A stretch of DNA of 64,000 nt from Epithemia pelagica (GCA_946965045.2 OX337231.1:868001-932000); one strand, 5' to 3'; shown: positions 10,254 through 19,894, counted from the stretch's first letter. Numbers and translations: made by a program. Notes: generated by a model from the letters alone, not told the origin.

Positions 10254-11302
10254 CGTACCCAACCGTACCAAAGATTCGATGCCGATTGCCGATGGTTGAG
10301 AATTATCTCTCATTGTTGTGGACACCGGACATAAGTGCGTCACATACCAAAGTGCTAACTATGCTACTTACTCGAGAAATCCACTCTCTCTAGCTAGGGG
10401 AATGCCCGTCTATTGACAAGTAATGCGACAACCTCTAGTAGGTAGGAAGAGAGCAAAAAGGAGTGCTTAGTGCTTTGCTCATATTGATAATGATCTGTTG
10501 TGAATAGTCAGATTGCTAGAGTGAAGATGAGATAAGGTAGAAGATCGGTGTCGACAATACTGTCTCTTTTTTATTGCACGAATATGCTAGCCAGAGTAGA
10601 TTTTGTTCCCCTTTCCCCCAAACTGACAAACTCCAAATCTGACGCCAATGACAACACCAAAGGTTGAAAGATGATGATTCGCAACTTGGCAACAGTGGCG
10701 GTAACCATTAATAGTGGAGTTTTCATGGTTGCTGGTACCAAGCCCTTGTCCTTTGGACCGACCAATGTTTTTCGACAATGATGATGTCATGCCAAATGTT
10801 AATCCATCCAACAGCGTTGGCAGAACAAACTGGCTGTTATCAAATCAATCGGAGGTGCCACTTCCATGGGAAAACTCCTACTCCTATCTACCTCACACCT
10901 CACCCTCACTGCATCCTTCCGCCACCATCATCCATCATGCCGCAATCGGGAGTGGGTCCGACTTCCGAATGCGGAACGCCCGTCGACCGGAGAACGAACA
11001 CGCACCAGAAACTATAAACTATCCACGCCTGAGAGGTGTAAATCAAAAATTCTTATAGATTTCTTTTGAGGCAAATAGACATAGCACGCCAGGTAGCATG
11101 CGTTGGGTTTGCCACGTGTTGCATGTCCATTTGACACCATTGACAACTCTGCACTACAAGTACTGCACGCACACCACTCCATTGGCAGAGAGGAGTCTGT
11201 TCTCTCTCCACAAAGAAACGCAATCATACGCAAACCCAACCATTGGTGTCGACTCGATCGTGTTCTCTTGGAGACGCTCTATCGTTGCTTGGATGTGGAG
11301 AG

Positions 11303-13855
11303 ATGGTTTCACCATTATGTTCTTCAGCCTCATTAGTCGAACCGACTCGAATCGAAAAACGATTCCGAACAGCAACAACAACATCCACTGCGGGTGAAGT
11401 TGCCGAGGAGGTTGCCAATCAGGTAAAAGCAAGTGATTCTATTGCCAGTGTTGGTCACAGTCACAATAACAACAACGAGAACCCCCTCCCCAACGAAACG
11501 AAACGTATTTCATCCAGTTCGGCAGCGGTGTTATCAGCAGATTCCTTGGACAACTTTGGTTTGCCATTGGAGACTAGTTACGCAGAGGACTCTTTTGAAA
11601 GCATGTGCTCGAGTTCGAATCGTAGAAATCGTCACAAAGCGTGTAATGAATTGGGACAAGAACAGCAACAGCAGGAAAGAGCAGAACATGAAAGCGCAAA
11701 CGATGAACAAGATGAGTCGCATCATCAAGAGCAGCAAGCGGGAGAAAACCAAGTCAGCAATCGCAGTCAGGATCAAAAGATTGTCTCCCTGGAGGAACGT
11801 GTTCATGAACTCGAGACGAAACTGCTAGTTCTCTCTCGATTGCTTCAAATGCAAAGACCAAACAATGGCCAATCTAATATTGATGGTAGACGCCGTCCTT
11901 CTCCCGAGAACTCTCCTGGTTCTGTGCCACCGATTCCTCCGCCTCCGTTTCTCCATCCGCCCTATGTCCGAGGGCTTCATCATACCAGGCGAAGGGGACC
12001 CGTCACACCTCTTTTGCCTTCTTCTAGTGCTCTCGACTCTAGGAACGGCGATGAAAATGACGATGATGACGACGATCTGTCAGGAGAGCGAACGCCACCC
12101 CAGCAGATTCAAAGTCCTCTCATACAAAAGGATGCAAAGTCTTATGCAGCCTTTCCTCATCTGGAGTCACCAGCAACCTTTTTAGGAATGGATTCAGATG
12201 TTGTAGCCATGGCATGTACGCCGGATGAAGAGGAAGACAGATATCACGTAGTGGAAAGTACTGGGAAACCTGAAACAGCGACACCGAAAGAGACGAGGGC
12301 AAGAAATGCTATGGAACGCGAAAGCTCCATCGACTTGAACGAATCGACCCCGTCTAACCCAGCAACGTCAACCACGCCGAAAGCAGTGGTCAAACTACAA
12401 CGATTGACTCCTGATCAGAGGAATCTGTCCTTTAGAATCCTCTATGGCGGAGATGAAAATACCTATCAACAAGAGCATCGTGCTGACCCCAACGCAATGG
12501 CATCGATGACTCCAGCGGAACGACGTTGGTTGGGTGCATCCGTGATGCTGAAACAAAATGATCCACGGAAGGAGGAGGTCGAAAGCTCCAATAATACTGG
12601 CAACAGTCGAAATGTCTCTGAGGACATTGTTCGGAACAAGTGGCTGGACTATCTGAACAGCTTTCAAGAATCAACACACGATGTGGATATGCAAATGGAA
12701 GAATTTGTGAAAGTACCAGGTCATGTTGAGAGTATCATGACATTTGGCTTTTTCATCTCGGTGGATTGTTTTCTGTACATTTTCACAATCCTGCCCATTC
12801 GCTTCATTTGGAGCTTGCTGTTGTTAATACTTCGAATGTTTTCGTTTTCGAAGAAGCCTTCACCTCCCTTTCAATTTCATCGACGCCATACCTACCAAAT
12901 GATTCAAGTTTTCCTCTTGTATGTGATTTATCAATATGTCTTGGTTCCAATCAGTATTGGAAAGCTGTATCATTGGATTCGTGGACAGGCCATGATCAAA
13001 CTTTACGTTCTCATAGCCATCGTCGAAGTCTTTGATCGACTCATGTGTTCTCTGGGACAAGATTGCCTCGACAGCATGTATTGGAATGCTGTAAACCGTC
13101 CAAAGTCCAGTCGGATGCTTATATCTGTTGCAGTTGTTTTGCTTTACGCAACATGCCATACACTTCTTTTGTTCCTGCATGTGGCCACCTTGAACGTGGC
13201 CATGAATTCTGCAGACATTGCGTTGCTCGCTTTGTTCATATCAGGAAACTTTGCAGAAATCAAATCATCAGTTTTCAAAAAATACAACAAACCTGCCCTT
13301 TTCAAATTGACTGCAGCTGATATTTGCGAACGATTCAAGCTGGGCTTGTTCCTTGGCTTGGTTCTCTTGTTGAATATGTGTCAAGGGATGAACCAAGGCC
13401 AATTTATGGACTATGTCCGTGTTTGTGCAATTGTTTGGTGTGCGGAGCTGTTGGCGGATTGGGTGAAACATTCCTTTATCACGAAGTTCAACATTTTACG
13501 AGCAAAGGTGTACGTTGAATATGCTCTTTTGCTCGCAGGTGATTTCACTGGCATTGGACACGAAGGAGTAAATTTGGACCACTCCCATGCGGTGGTGAAG
13601 CGCATTGGGTTTGCCCAACTTCCGCTGGTTTGTGTCACTTTACGCCTCTTGCGCGAAGCGGCGAAGTACGCGACCATCAATGATTATTGGCCCCCGATCC
13701 CCGTCTTTAGTTTCTTGTCTGTTTTTGTTGTGTGGCTGGTGTTGTTGGCGGTCAAATTGGCCCTTGGAAGTTTGCTCCATCGCATATCGTGGAACAAACT
13801 TCAACGTGTACCTGAAATCATTCCACCGTCCGCCCAAAGCAAGAAAAAGCTATAG
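11303..13855 (+). CDS. TAPT1: TAPT1/EMP65-family ER membrane protein with long disordered N-terminus
   Basis: FGFFISVDCFLYIFTILPIR, IRGQAMIKLYV...VEVFDRLMCSLGQD, TLNVAMNS...LLALFISGNFAEIKSSVFKK, DICERF, DWVKHSFITKFN. First in-frame ATG at 11303; start uncertain. Confidence 0.88.
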   Translation: MVSPLCSSASLVEPTRIEKRFRTATTTSTAGEVAEEVANQVKASDSIASVGHSHNNNNENPLPNETKRISSSSAAVLSADSLDNFGLPLETSYAEDSFESMCSSSNRRNRHKACNELGQEQQQQERAEHESANDEQDESHHQEQQAGENQVSNRSQDQKIVSLEERVHELETKLLVLSRLLQMQRPNNGQSNIDGRRRPSPENSPGSVPPIPPPPFLHPPYVRGLHHTRRRGPVTPLLPSSSALDSRNGDENDDDDDDLSGERTPPQQIQSPLIQKDAKSYAAFPHLESPATFLGMDSDVVAMACTPDEEEDRYHVVESTGKPETATPKETRARNAMERESSIDLNESTPSNPATSTTPKAVVKLQRLTPDQRNLSFRILYGGDENTYQQEHRADPNAMASMTPAERRWLGASVMLKQNDPRKEEVESSNNTGNSRNVSEDIVRNKWLDYLNSFQESTHDVDMQMEEFVKVPGHVESIMTFGFFISVDCFLYIFTILPIRFIWSLLLLILRMFSFSKKPSPPFQFHRRHTYQMIQVFLLYVIYQYVLVPISIGKLYHWIRGQAMIKLYVLIAIVEVFDRLMCSLGQDCLDSMYWNAVNRPKSSRMLISVAVVLLYATCHTLLLFLHVATLNVAMNSADIALLALFISGNFAEIKSSVFKKYNKPALFKLTAADICERFKLGLFLGLVLLLNMCQGMNQGQFMDYVRVCAIVWCAELLADWVKHSFITKFNILRAKVYVEYALLLAGDFTGIGHEGVNLDHSHAVVKRIGFAQLPLVCVTLRLLREAAKYATINDYWPPIPVFSFLSVFVVWLVLLAVKLALGSLLHRISWNKLQRVPEIIPPSAQSKKKL

Positions 13856-14366
13856 TTTCATAAGATTGTATCCCAGTTTGTAATACAATGATGTCATCTA
13901 GCACTCGCATAAGTTATAAATTCTGCAATGATGGACAGAAGCTTGTTTTCGTCGTATTGGAAAGTGTCGTTGGTGGTGGTTCCATTTGAACCGATGAAGT
14001 TTGTTGTTTCTAGCCCCGTCAACCAAGGAAGTTTGTCATCTCAAGAGCAGTGGCGAGAACTGAGCACCAGTCTACACCTTCAAAGGTCACAAACTTATGA
14101 AGTATGCATATCTTGACTCAGCCGTTAAGTTGGAATAACTTGTTGACATAAAACACTCGGTTTTCGCATTGTCGCCCCGCTTGTGCCACATCCAAGTTTG
14201 GTGACAATGGAACGGCCAGATAACCCAATGAACAATAAAAAATAGTATGCATAAATCGAGCGTGACACTCGACTGTTTAAAGAAGTCCAAGAACACAAAA
14301 TTGACCACACTACCCCGTGCCAAAATCCCATCAAGAAAGAGAAAACCTTGTTGTGCCAAACTTTCC

Positions 14367-17034
14367 CTAGAAAGAATTCTCCACAATATTCACACCATTG
14401 CCGACGCGACTCGAGTTGGTGGATTCGTGACCTTCCCTAGACGATTGGTCTGATATGCCACGAAGTGGAGGCCCTGCGTTGGCCATTTGAAATGCACCAA
14501 GCATGTTGTTGCTGCTGGGAAGATCAGGTGGAGGTGCAACGCTTGTTTCCATGGCTTGCGGAGTCTCCCTACCCATTGGTTGAGCTGCAGGTTTCAGTGA
14601 ATCTGCCCCAATGCTTGATTTCAAAAACTGCCAATCTCGCACCACCAACAGCGCCACATCTCGCTTTGAACGACGCGTATCTTGCGTGTATCCTTCGTAA
14701 CTCTTCTTGATCACCTCCACCATGTCGTTCTCAATATCACTGCGGCGACCGGGTGCACGCAAAAGAAGTAAACGAAGCGACATAAAGTATGGGGTGAGGG
14801 AACTAGGGGCTCCGGCTGAGTTCGTTGGTTCTCCGGTAGCGGACATGTCCGAGAGTGGCATGTACTCCCCTAACATGCTAGCAATAAGCTGTTCGGTATC
14901 GTCGACCGATTTCAGTCCGGTCGTCTTTGGTAGTGGCTGGGAAGAAGGTCTTGCAACCTCTCCTTCAGACGGATGTTGGAGCTGTAATGTTCCTCCTGAG
15001 CCCGTCGACGAAGCGTCCTTGTTATCCCCCATTTCTACTACAAGTTTCCATTTCGGCTCCGGACTCAGCTTGGAGAGATCAGCCATAGTTTTCAGGACAA
15101 GTGCGGGATTCTCTAGAAGATCATTCACGCTGTACATCGACACAACGATCAGCCCGATGACATTGGTAGTCAAAGGAAAGCCGAAACCGGTTTTGACGCC
15201 ATACACCTTGGCACCTCCAGCGCGTTCAAAAAACTTGGGGTCTGCTTCATCCAGGTGTCTTTCCCATACAGGCTTGCCTGACTGGAAAACACGGCCAGGC
15301 AATCCGACACCAGAAGCAAAAGAGAATCTAGTACTGTACTCTCCATATTCATCTAATTGGAAAACAATAGAGGAATCGATGTTGTGATGGCAAGTCGCGT
15401 ATCCTGCGTGGAAAAGGCGAAGTCCAGGGGGGACGTCCTCGCCACTCTTTCTGTAGGAGGGCACCCAAACATCAACATGATGAAATGGGAGGTTGTTCCT
15501 TTCCATATAGTGTGCCATTTCTTCAAGGAACGGACCGCAATTCTTTCGGACAAGTTTCGGCATTCCTATGGCAAGATCGTCCAAACCGAGGAGCTTCGAG
15601 TAATCTTCTTGAGTAGCAGCATTATTGACACCATGGGCACCAATGTCCAAGATATTCGAAATGAAAGCAGCGTCTCCTTCTTCATCGGAACTGTTAACTG
15701 GATGAGCCGATGAAGTTGGAGAATCGGTGATGCTTCGGAATCTATGCATCTCAGAAGATCTGTCTCCAGAAGTAACCATCGTGGGCGCGAACTTTTTGTC
15801 AACCTTGGGTTTCTTGGGAGGTCGCTGCACCGGCACCCCGCCAAAGAATACACCCTCTTGCTCGTTTCGAACATCCGTCCGAAGCGCACGTCCCATTCTC
15901 AGACGACGAGCTTTGCGGAACCGTTCTTCTGCTTCAGATGCACGCCGTTCCATATCTTCGAGACTGGCGATCCAGTCATTGGCGTCCAACATTGAGCTTC
16001 CAATCTGGAGACACAAATTCGATAAGTGGGAACGCCAGAGACGCGAGTTGTTGAACTTCAACTCAAGCCGTGAGGCTTCCGAACTGATAGATTCGAGGAA
16101 CTTTTGTTCCAATGAACTCATAACTTCGACATCAAGTCTTGGTACCGGCGACGCAAAATTGTAGGAACGTACACTTAAGCGGGCGTTTTTCATTTTCTTG
16201 GTGAGACGACTGCTCTTACACAAGAGAACTTCTGCGAGAAATTCATTGAGCTTGAGACCATGCTCGACCGTGATCCTGCCATTGTCGAATGCGTCTACAA
16301 GGAAATCTACGTATGCAACCTCGTTATCTGTCCAGCGCCCGGTTCGTTGATATTGCTGATCAGACGACACGTTGCCACTGGTACCTTGGTTGTGCGATAG
16401 CAACAGATAAGATGTCTCAGCTTGAGTATCAATCTGGTTGAAATCGATGGTATTTTGACTGGAAGCACCCCCTGCGCTCGCAATCGCTTTCTCTTCCTTT
16501 TCTCGTAGCGCCGCCTTTCTCACCTCCACTGCTCGATCAACGTCTTCAGAGGAAAGGGGAAAGAGATGAATTCGGAAAACCGAGCTGGAACGACATGCTG
16601 GACAGAGCAATGTATTCGGTATCACCGGTTTGATCTCATTGCAGCGCAGGCCAGCTTCTGATACCACGAGATTTAGTGGGACACATCGCTGTCAATACGA
16701 TAAAACATAAAAACGCGTCAGGCGCTTCGATAGTTTTGAAATCAAGACTAACCAACATCCGGATATCATGACACCGTCATACATATGAAGAGTGCTTGAT
16801 GTCGATCAAAAATGGGAGCAACACACGTGGTTCGGTCCACCAGCAAGACAATGGAGCTGTACCGCAACAACAGCAAGGAGGATGTCGGCGCGCAAACGAA
16901 ATTATGGTTCAGAACAAACATACCGCATGAATTTCACAGCCACAACCGAGGATGCGGACGTCCGCTCCAGGATGAAGACAGAGCCTACAGCGACGACTGG
17001 GCCCACATGCTGCTCCCGAAGGAAAGGAAGACAT
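14367..17034 (-). CDS. RING-like Zn finger + stramenopile Myb-like domain + NLP-type GAF protein (2 exons; intron 16689-16923)
   Basis: Exon 1 (ATG 17034) ends CGCEIHA|GTATGT; the acceptor TTGACAG at 16689 continues RCVP in frame with the 766-aa ORF, giving CRLC...CGCEIHARC...CPAC. Then GRWTDNEVAYVDFLVDAF...LLCKSSRLTKKMK and YGEYSTRFSFASGVGLPGRVF. Confidence 0.8.
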
Positions 17035-19894
17035 GGTCCAAAAAGGGGCTGTCTGCTTATTGTAGTGCCACTGACGTTGTTCTGCTTGTCTGTGAAACAA
17101 GGATGTCCTTTCTGCTGTTGAGCGTTGTGTTGTTACATAGTAGTTTTCGTGGCTCCATACAATAGCGCTCGCTAGCAGCGGTGGATGTGGTGCCTTGTGC
17201 GTGGCTGTGGCCCCAAGATCGAGCGTTTTAATACTCCCTAGCGCGACCTTATGAAGGAAGATGGGACATCGGATGTTTTAAACGAAATTACTACTTCTAC
17301 ATCCGTAATACCTTCGCTAGTCTACGAGTAGAGCGTAATACTATTTTTTCTGCAATAGACCACGGGCAACTGTTTTCTGTTTTCTGCGTCTGTCTGTCCC
17401 TGCAGTTCTTGGGACCAACGCAGGGAATACTCGTAGAGAGGAATAGGGAATAGACAATAGACTACTATAACGACTAGCCAGTAAAAGGGCTCTTACTCTT
17501 ACATGTTAGTTGTACTCCCACGGTAAAATATCAAAATCATTAATACTCCTATAGAAACTAGTAGGTAGTGACACCCTCTAGATAGAAAGCTAGCTCTACT
17601 AGAGGAGAAATGACTACTCAATGACTCAGTGATCTACTTAGCCAGAGAAGTATTGTAGCTTGAAGGTTTGTGATTTTTTGTGAAGGAAGAAAAGGTTACT
17701 CGAATGCTGTTAAACTACCCACTACCCATCTCGCTACTCTTGACGGTAGTAGAACTAGATCAATTCAGCTAGTAGATAGTAGAGAGTGCTGCTGAAATAC
17801 TATTTTGTAAAGTCTGACATCTCTGATCTCCTCTGACCATCAGTGTAATCAGTAATCAGTAATCATTCTCAGTCTACTACCGGTAGTAAAACGCTCACCA
17901 CGTTTGTGATGGCTGATGCTTGTCGTCGTAATATTATTATGTTTGATGTTTGTCGTATTCCTCTGTCAAGATAACAGATGCTCAAGGATCTATAAGCTGA
18001 CTTTATGTCTCGTTATGAATTATTATTTATTATCAATAAAAGCTACCGCCATTGGACCTCGGGTTTCGGGTCATTCTCGAGTTCGAGATCTCTAATTATC
18101 TGTAGGAGTGGTCCTAACTCCCGTAGTATCCGAACAAAATACAACTGGGAGTGCAGCTACGTAGCTTCTGGTACATTCCTACGATACTTTATACGCCATA
18201 GTAGGTGGGCATCCACAAGACGATACCTTTGCTACCTTATCTATCTTCTTTTCCAATTTACTCCAACACCTCTGTATGTAGAGCGGAATAAAATCTCCTT
18301 GGCGATTCTGTATGAGCCTCTCCAGGTGCCCAAACATGGTGCCATAGTCTCCTTCTCTCTACCAATCTATCGTACCATCAGGATCCAGCCGTCACGGTCG
18401 TGGACAGGAGAAGCCGTTGTTTGAATCTCCCAACATGGCAGCAAACATTTGCCAAAATAGCCCTTCCTCCACCCGATATCTGTCCACTAAGAGACTCCTG
18501 TAGTAGCAGCACATACACGCACTCAAATTCACTACACTGGGTGTCGTCCATCGTTCATTCATAGGAGTAGAAGAGAAGACCACAATTCTCGCCCCTCGAC
18601 CATCCACAGAATGTATCGTCCGGGAGAAAGGTATCTAGATACCCTCCGTTTCAGTGCGACCGTGAAATTGGACGAAAAAACCGTTCTCTATGGACTAAAG
18701 AGGCGGATGGTATGACTCTTTTGGATCTCTTGGGTCTATTCTACCGACCTATTACTCCTACCTAGGTAGTACGGGCAGTGTCCGAGTGCAGAATGATTCA
18801 AAGTGTCCCTAAGGACGAACATGGAAGTGTTTTGGTGATTCTTTTTTATGGACATGCTCGTGAGATTAAATTCTACCTTGAGACGACAACCAACAACAAT
18901 ACTCTCGTTCCTTCGTTTGTTGCTCCCTTTCCAATAAGGATGACTGAATGGAGTGTCCACCACCACCACTTTTGTGTGGTGTGTACGGCGACCTGGCTTG
19001 TTATTATCTCAACCGTCCCGTGTAGAGAACATGGTTGAACGGGAAGCTCGTTTGGTTTGTGGCCTCGAGCAATTGCGTGCGCACAACGACTTGTCGTTGT
19101 TGTCTTGTTGATGATGGTGCTGTGATGTCGACATCGTCATCATGGCGATGGGTGCTTCTTGCGACAAGGCTCAAGGTGGCCCATTACGCCGACCAACTGT
19201 ATTCCCGACACTCGACGGTCGCAGGTTTTCGGGCAGGAGGAGGAGCCCTTGTTGCTCTTTCGGCTGCCACCTGGTCTGGTGGTTGGTCTTGTTGTTGCGC
19301 CATAAAGACTTGATAGATGCGGGAATGCAGGAGCAGTGCCTTGTCGGAGACCAACGAATACGATCACGACGACGACTCTTGTGGATGGTTGTTGCTGTTG
19401 CTGTTGCTGTTGTAGGATTTTGGATTGCCACCACAAGGGCCGAAGGTGTACGTGAAATGAAAAATGTGAGAAAAGTTGTATTTCAGTCATGAAGTACACT
19501 TACTTTCATAGTGCAGAGTTGTATTTTTGGCATGGTTTGCGCAACTGAAAGGGCAACTTCTAGTTGTATGGCATACTTCCGCAACTATAAGCTAGAGGCA
19601 CACTATGAAGTACGAAGACATACTCCTGATGGGACTGACTGGACTGATGCATACTCCTGCATCCGCTAAAATAGTACACGATTCGAGACCCAGTCAAGAA
19701 GAATACTACTGCAACTTCCGGTAATGGACTCAAAACGTACGAAATCTTCCTACTTCTCAGAGTATCGTCACGATGGAACAACCGTTTTCATATTGCGTTA
19801 TCACACACCAATAGCTCTGATATGATCATATTAGATACAGATTCTTTTGATATGAGGCAAGCATCCCGAGTCACGGATGTCGGGGGACATTGTA

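Follow-up and report, generated by a model that had tools for sequence, protein, structure and literature searches.

Introduction

Little is known of the proteins that regulate how diatoms use nitrogen, and among the few candidates is the RGQ family. The name is said to stand for RING-GAF-Gln-containing protein, and RGQ1 reportedly came out of a yeast one-hybrid screen. The title of Matthijs et al. (2016, Plant Physiol 170:489; PMC4704581) names RING-domain transcription factors of Phaeodactylum, and Smith et al. (2019; PMC6779911) describe 'RGQs' as transcription factors that respond broadly to nitrogen-replete or nitrogen-deplete status, without reporting them among the nitrate-specific genes. 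In plants, a GAF-like module of another kind of regulator, the MYC_N domain, is known for docking other proteins: JAZ peptides and MYB R3 repeats, according to the titles of PDB entries. Here we describe a gene on the minus strand of a 64,000-nucleotide (nt) stretch of the diatom Epithemia pelagica (GCA_946965045.2 OX337231.1:868001-932000; the window), between positions 14367 and 17034, whose product joins an N-terminal RING to a GAF-like domain related to MYC_N.

An initial annotation, made from the sequence alone, had read this locus as a RING, a Myb-like domain, a coiled coil and a GAF of the type found in plant NIN-like proteins (NLPs), with a hidden first exon. Its observations on the sequence and the overall architecture have stood; its NLP and Myb labels were over-specific. 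A RING-GAF transcription-factor family is already published for diatoms, and we present the gene as a well-founded annotation and do not claim a protein of a new kind.

Results

A short first exon completes the gene

The gene opens with an ATG at 17034 and runs for 37 codons to a GTATGT donor; after a TTGACAG acceptor the frame reopens at 16688 and continues for 773 codons to a TAG (14367-14369). The gene is nuclear, has two exons, comes from a raphid pennate diatom and has a product of 810 residues. We compared the region 14200-17300 with four public runs of a single study (X1-X4). In run X4, which is of the same organism, contig record 12 (1998 nt) covers 14889-16688 and 16924-17121, and its joint (16688|16924) omits exactly 235 nt; the ends of the omitted stretch read CT..AC on the plus strand, that is, GT..AG on the minus strand of the gene. 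Within the intron, the depth of X4 falls to zero over 16696-16903, and the contigs of this run reach no further than about 17121-17148; within the 5' untranslated stretch no frame-opening ATG lies upstream of 17034. Runs X1-X3 hold the contiguous, unspliced genomic form of the locus.

The splice is real. The hidden exon and the 235-nt GT-AG intron (16689-16923) proposed in the initial annotation are borne out by the X4 joint and by orthologues in which the same sequence is contiguous across the junction: the annotated P0002 of Epithemia clementina (76% identity), the transcript-derived MMETSP protein P0005 (57%), and likewise proteins of Seminavis, Fistulifera and Mayamaea. Besides P0005, the annotated proteins P0002, P0036, P0045 and P0085 carry the whole RING in one piece. 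When the intron is retained, translation meets a stop 4 codons past exon 1, and a mechanical list of open reading frames (ORFs) holds at this locus only a GTG-started frame of 766 residues. A pseudogene or a chance ORF is excluded because of the conservation of the frame and the spliced X4 contig. Between the window and the contigs of X2-X4 we also noted single-base differences at 14403, 14784, 15372, 15951, 16674, 16804 and 17172, the one at 15951 (C>T) being common to X2 and X4; they suggest different alleles or strains.

The intron that splits the RING is conserved

Joining the two exons brings together eight ligands in cross-brace spacing, C16-x2-C19-x11-C31-x-C33-x2-H36-x2-C39-x26-C66-x2-C69, in agreement with the earlier reading of RING-H2-like spacing with Cys at ligand 4 (C4HC3). 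Such a ligand set is that of the RING-v/PHD type, and the spacing here is that of RING-H2. A complete N-terminus is found in 15 of 99 aligned database homologues (P0003-P0120, alignment A1), and all 15 keep the eight ligands, including the Cys at ligand 4 and the His at ligand 5, so that the conservation in orthologues on which the initial annotation had made its RING depend is there.

The first half of the RING is absent from the other 84. Thirteen gene calls without exon 1 extend upstream of the junction, and in 12 of them the residues found there are unrelated and end in Q (11 cases) or K (one case) immediately before 'RC.P'; the remaining 70 begin further downstream than the junction. A Q or K at this place matches read-through of a 'cag' acceptor, and we therefore read the intron position as conserved across the family, on the strength of these sequences. 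The RING half has been lost from most database gene calls because gene callers overlook the short first exon.

Exons 1 and 2 were searched separately, and the work on the complete RING was done on the orthologue P0002, whose N-terminal model has a RING/U-box fold. With this whole model, Foldseek returned nothing below E 0.38, and a generic helical hairpin accounted for most of what a wide structure search gave. The RING carries the CP.C-R motif of active ubiquitin ligases (E3s). The position after the last RING Cys, which is the linchpin in well-studied RING E3s, is an Arg here and K, Q or H in the orthologues shown.

The GAF-like domain is closest to plant MYC_N

The GAF-like domain lies at about 15027-15539. 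Within the GAF clan it belongs to the plant branch of MYC_N and NLP, and it is closer to MYC_N. Its AlphaFold2 (AF2) model (predicted local distance difference test, pLDDT, 81.5) retrieves EGL3 and MYC3 first in Foldseek, with E-values of 1.2e-9 to 1e-8 and template-modelling (TM) scores of 0.57-0.67, followed, at E 1e-5 to 3e-4, by NitrOFF1 (a nitrate sensor derived from NreA; E 8e-6), NreA itself, and GAFs of cyclic-nucleotide (phosphodiesterase, PDE) and two-component proteins. The fold thus vindicates the initial annotation in calling this domain a genuine GAF. A profile of 66 sequences of the GAF region, run against all PDB sequences, matched MYC3 (E 3.5e-8) and EGL3 (E 1.7e-7) of Arabidopsis, and no classical GAF.

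The Pfam family bHLH-MYC_N (PF14215) was found in 66 of 66 homologues, most of which carry it in their precomputed annotation as well; GAF_2 was found in 33 of them and GAF_NLP (PF22922) in 24, weakly (best E 6e-6). For the domain of the window, bHLH-MYC_N gives 30.3 bits against a cut-off of 30.2 when the domain is taken alone and 27.8 bits within the whole exon-2 protein, and GAF_NLP gives no match at E<=1. Profile, Foldseek and Pfam all bring the domain closer to MYC3/EGL3, and the 'NLP-type' label is not supported as given. The motif that had suggested it, GLPGRVF, is indeed present at 15285-15305, but it does not mark NLPs specifically, since the signature S..F...G.GLPG..F is equally present in MYC3. 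A Pfam scan of exon 2 to E 10 lists bHLH-MYC_N and GAF_2 only, with no RWP-RK, PB1 or HLH family, in line with the earlier remark that a single GAF is visible and that RWP-RK and PB1 are missing. The polar residues R49, E72, Y76, R114 and T125 (alignment A2) are invariant in the domain. A complex prediction of the N-terminal module with the GAF domain, made to probe an intramolecular contact between MYC_N and Myb-like parts, scored 0.00 and weighs neither way.

An unnamed helical domain widespread in ochrophytes

Nowhere in the family are invariant columns packed more densely than in the core from RTGRWT to RLTKKMKNA at 16182-16346, where the initial annotation had located its GRWT...RLTKK domain. 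In the AF2 model of P0002 it forms three short helices (157-171, 183-191 and 195-201), with a further conserved helix downstream, all within a longer helical module. Its description as Myb-like went too far, because the resemblance is limited to the first helix: hhalign against 25 true Myb repeats from this genome aligned helix 1 only (17-21 columns, probability 78-85%; reversed control 0.2%), and PF00249 found 62 repeats in the genome, this domain not among them.

A related version of the domain, RRGKWT...CDPMRISKKF, occurs in two near-identical genes on contig 17, at 2665921-2666142 (-) and 2703583-2703804 (+), about 38 kb apart and in opposite orientation. In both genes the domain is the only part that is not of low complexity, and Q/N/S/T-rich low complexity follows; they look like transcription factors. 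At E<=0.001, a search with this version finds 2687 representative proteins, including those of the chrysophyte Paraphysomonas and of Chrysoparadoxa, with 64-98% identity across the best 150 of them, and corresponds to no Pfam family. The window and contig-17 versions align at twelve invariant positions (alignment A4). The nearest entry by features (0.89) is a 94-residue Atlas cluster that is commonest in Oomycota, and by shape the same cluster gives a TM of 0.78 by match (0.24 by model) and a root mean square deviation of 2.2 over 88 residues. These alignments place the helical domain in an unnamed family widespread in ochrophytes, and the initial annotation was right to compare it with diatom and oomycete proteins. 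Judging from its context, the domain is probably the DNA-binding part of the protein. One other candidate was discarded: SPL4 of Arabidopsis has an SBP domain that gives a marginal match (E 0.012) with the RLTKKMKNAKL stretch (CKSSRLTKKMKNAKL, 16182-16211; A3 profile positions 155-206), which was judged a chance match because the SBP zinc ligands are absent.

The rest of the protein, its paralogues and its family

The complete domain order is RING, helical hairpin, unnamed helical domain, long helices and basic patch, GAF-like domain and C-terminal module (Table 1). The putative coiled coil of the initial annotation shows in the AF2 model only as long, confident helices. The basic patch RPPKKPKVDKK resembles a nuclear localisation signal (NLS) and may serve as one. 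The C-terminal module, which had gone undescribed in the initial annotation, is marked by the invariant A1 columns G646, P650, R678, L679, S702, L720 and L728; it corresponds to no Pfam family, and an Atlas feature search gave no usable match. Gln makes up 3.1% of the protein, with at most 7 Q per 40 residues, and some homologues reach 10 in 40.

Table 1. Features of the gene in the window, with the basis of each
Feature	Position	Strand	Basis
5' untranslated part, minimum extent	17035..17121	-	X4 contig records 12 (to 17121) and 13 (to 17148)
Exon 1, coding, 37 codons; RING ligands 1-5 (C16, C19, C31, C33, H36)	16924..17034	-	translation; matching N-termini of P0002 and P0005
Intron, 235 nt, GTATGT...TTGACAG, phase 0, between RING ligands 5 and 6	16689..16923	-	X4 joint; position conserved in diatoms
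Exon 2, coding, 773 codons and TAG	14367..16688	-	collinear with at least 442 diatom homologues
RING finger, C4HC3 ligands, RING-H2-like spacing (intron included)	16590..16989	-	
Helical hairpin after the RING	16386..16547	-	AF2 helices 84-107 and 117-137 of P0002, transferred via alignment A1
'R-G-R/K-W-T ... C ... R-L/I-T/S-K-K' helical domain, about 100 residues, candidate DNA-binding	16062..16361	-	A4 invariant residues; AF2 helices
Long helices ('coiled coil' of the initial annotation)	15861..16130	-	AF2 helices 223-236, 240-265 and 273-312 of P0002, pLDDT >90 over most
Basic patch RPPKKPKVDKK, NLS-like	15792..15824	-	sequence; kept in closer homologues only
GAF-like domain, plant MYC_N/NLP class	15006..15563	-	AF2, Foldseek, PDB profile, Pfam
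Conserved C-terminal module (LLGEYMPL ... FMSLRLLLLR ... RRS ... DW.FLK), about 110 residues	14571..14918	-	A1 invariant columns

Homology searches recovered at least 442 homologues at E<=1e-3 and, with a second (Fistulifera) query, 820 at E<=1e-30. Among the matches listed, every homologue named to organism is a diatom (raphid and araphid pennates, and Attheya), and the closest named relative is that of Epithemia clementina, with 76% protein identity. In the genome itself, two paralogues lie tail to tail on contig 1, at 3182187-3183638 (+) and 3185014-3186927 (-), both of which encode the helical domain as well as the GAF; a TGA inside the match to one of them may be an intron or a break. Turning to the literature, the supplements of PMC6779911 contain neither 'RGQ' nor PF14215, and a literature search found no open paper describing the RING-GAF family, the citing papers merely listing the reference. 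The upstream neighbour of the gene, at 11243-13855 (+), encodes a DUF747/TAPT1-like eukaryotic membrane protein (PF05346, E 1.5e-90) that begins with a long low-complexity N-terminal region.

Discussion

We consider it likely that the 810-residue product of the gene is a regulator from the RING-GAF family of diatoms, probably an RGQ, and that it works along the following lines. The protein would be nuclear and would bind promoter DNA through the unnamed helical domain, its activity being gated by the GAF-like domain. By analogy with MYC3-JAZ and EGL3-MYB, it is possible that this gate responds to the docking of a regulatory partner protein, and we tentatively favour this over a small ligand; that the domain would bind a small nitrogen-related ligand instead seems doubtful to us. 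The RING could ubiquitinate the partner or the protein itself, or else act as a zinc-dependent interaction surface, and the whole may be linked to nitrogen status. Membership in the RGQ family is very probable because the architecture matches: the N-terminal RING and the GAF are both there, though the Gln-rich region is missing.

Other explanations have to be weighed against this one. The protein could be a nitrate or nitrogen-metabolite sensor in the manner of NLP7, in which the GAF binds a small molecule and switches DNA binding and the RING ligase within one polypeptide. The GAF_NLP matches in about a third of the homologues (24/66), the retrieval of NitrOFF1 and of nitrate-bound NreA (E 3e-4) by Foldseek, and the invariant polar residues, which would suit a ligand pocket, are all consistent with such a role, and RGQ transcripts are reported to respond to nitrogen status (PMC6779911). 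However, this response is broad, and the transcripts are not reported among the nitrate-specific genes in the same source; GAF_NLP misses the domain of the window itself, while bHLH-MYC_N is above its cut-off for the domain alone; RWP-RK and PB1 are missing; and MYC3 and EGL3, its nearest relatives of solved structure, are known for docking proteins, with no small ligand. Since the plant MYC_N domain docks JAZ and MYB R3, partner docking is at least as plausible as ligand sensing, and we find an NLP7-like sensor quite improbable.

A different division of labour is also conceivable, in which the protein is primarily a RING E3 ligase or a chromatin adaptor, the helical domain being a SANT-like binder of proteins or histones and the GAF-like domain recruiting substrates. 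The CP.C-R motif of active E3s would fit this, as would an Atlas shape search that lists the zf-C3HC4_3 E3 ligases MYLIP and NEURL1, at low TM, and the restriction of the Myb/SANT likeness to helix 1, SANT domains often binding proteins and not DNA. Yet the Arg at the linchpin position is not conserved in the orthologues shown, the helical domain also stands at the head of Q/N/S-rich proteins resembling classical activators, and the published family name, as it stands in the title of PMC4704581, speaks of transcription factors; we regard this explanation as unlikely. The last explanation takes exon 1 and the RING to be a chance pattern, with the true start inside the long ORF as in the 766-residue gene call P0001. 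It could appeal to the 84 homologues without the first RING half, but the truncated calls show intron read-through right before the junction, the 766-residue ORF begins at a GTG, and both the spliced X4 contig and the orthologues that keep all RING ligands contiguously (transcript-derived P0005, and P0002, P0036, P0045 and P0085) refute it; the probability that remains to it is negligible.

Several observations nevertheless weigh against a RING-GAF regulator of the RGQ family as we describe it, or temper the evidence for it. The library type of run X4 is absent from its record ('?'), although the run behaves as RNA would. No Pfam RING model is significant, the best, RING_XB3-XBAT31, reaching E 0.015 and 15.8 bits where the cut-off is 50, and the RING/U-box fold match of the P0002 model is of middling Z only. 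The helical domain has no match to a Pfam family or to a PDB sequence, and no DNA-binding family recognises it. As for the RGQ assignment, it is made by architecture; no Phaeodactylum protein is among the best 120 matches of either homologue search (442 and 820); and the protein does not have the Gln-rich tract of the RGQ name, a tract that may not define the whole family.

Confirming the gene model has consequences beyond this locus, for the conserved intron splits the RING and most automated gene calls of the family lose it (84 of 99 aligned). The domain that probably binds DNA has no name, is present in thousands of ochrophyte proteins and merits a family definition of its own; the conserved C-terminal module, of no known family, adds a further point to the description of the gene. 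Kinship with the docking domains of MYC and EGL3 offers a testable mechanism other than ligand sensing. The closest named relative of this diatom lineage hosts nitrogen-fixing endosymbionts. That the GAF-like domain should be a true sensor of nitrate or another nitrogen metabolite, and the protein a sensor, DNA binder and ubiquitin ligase in a single chain, appears to us very improbable; if true, the protein would be to diatoms what NLP7 is to plants, with other domains for DNA binding and for output.

Several known systems can be set beside the protein. Its RING can be compared with those of IAP/MUL1/XB3-type E3s (BIRC7, PDB 4AUQ; Pfam zf-C3HC4_3 and RING_XB3-XBAT31), from which it differs in having Cys at ligand 4 and His at ligand 5 (C4HC3), in the short RING-H2 spacing between ligands 4 and 5, and in Pfam scores far under the cut-off; also, it is N-terminal, whereas theirs is C-terminal. 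The helical domain shares with Myb/SANT repeats (PF00249) the opening G-x-W-T-x-E-E helix and the three predicted helices, but helices 2 and 3 do not align, and of the Trp/aromatic positions of Myb it lacks the second and the third. With the bacterial nitrate-binding GAF NreA (PDB 4IUK, 6IZK) the GAF-like domain has the fold in common (Foldseek E 3e-5 to 3e-4, TM about 0.5), but identity is 10-13%, with no match at the level of sequence. Plant NLP7 (PF22922) belongs to the same GAF clan and has a GLPGRV-type motif; our protein has a single GAF-like domain and neither RWP-RK nor PB1. The likeness is closer to the N-terminal domain of plant MYC2/MYC3 and EGL3/GL3 (PF14215; PDB 4RRU, 4RS9, 7FDL), with which it shares the GAF-like fold and the motifs GVGLPG and ERAG..(I/V)YG(L/V)KT, although here no bHLH follows and the domain is preceded by a RING and the unnamed helical domain; partner peptides of the JAZ or MYB R3 kind are not known from diatoms. 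In overall architecture, the described system most like it is the RGQ family of Phaeodactylum tricornutum, which, compared by description and not by sequence, is alike in its N-terminal RING and its GAF, is called a family of transcription factors and is tied to the early response to nitrogen stress.

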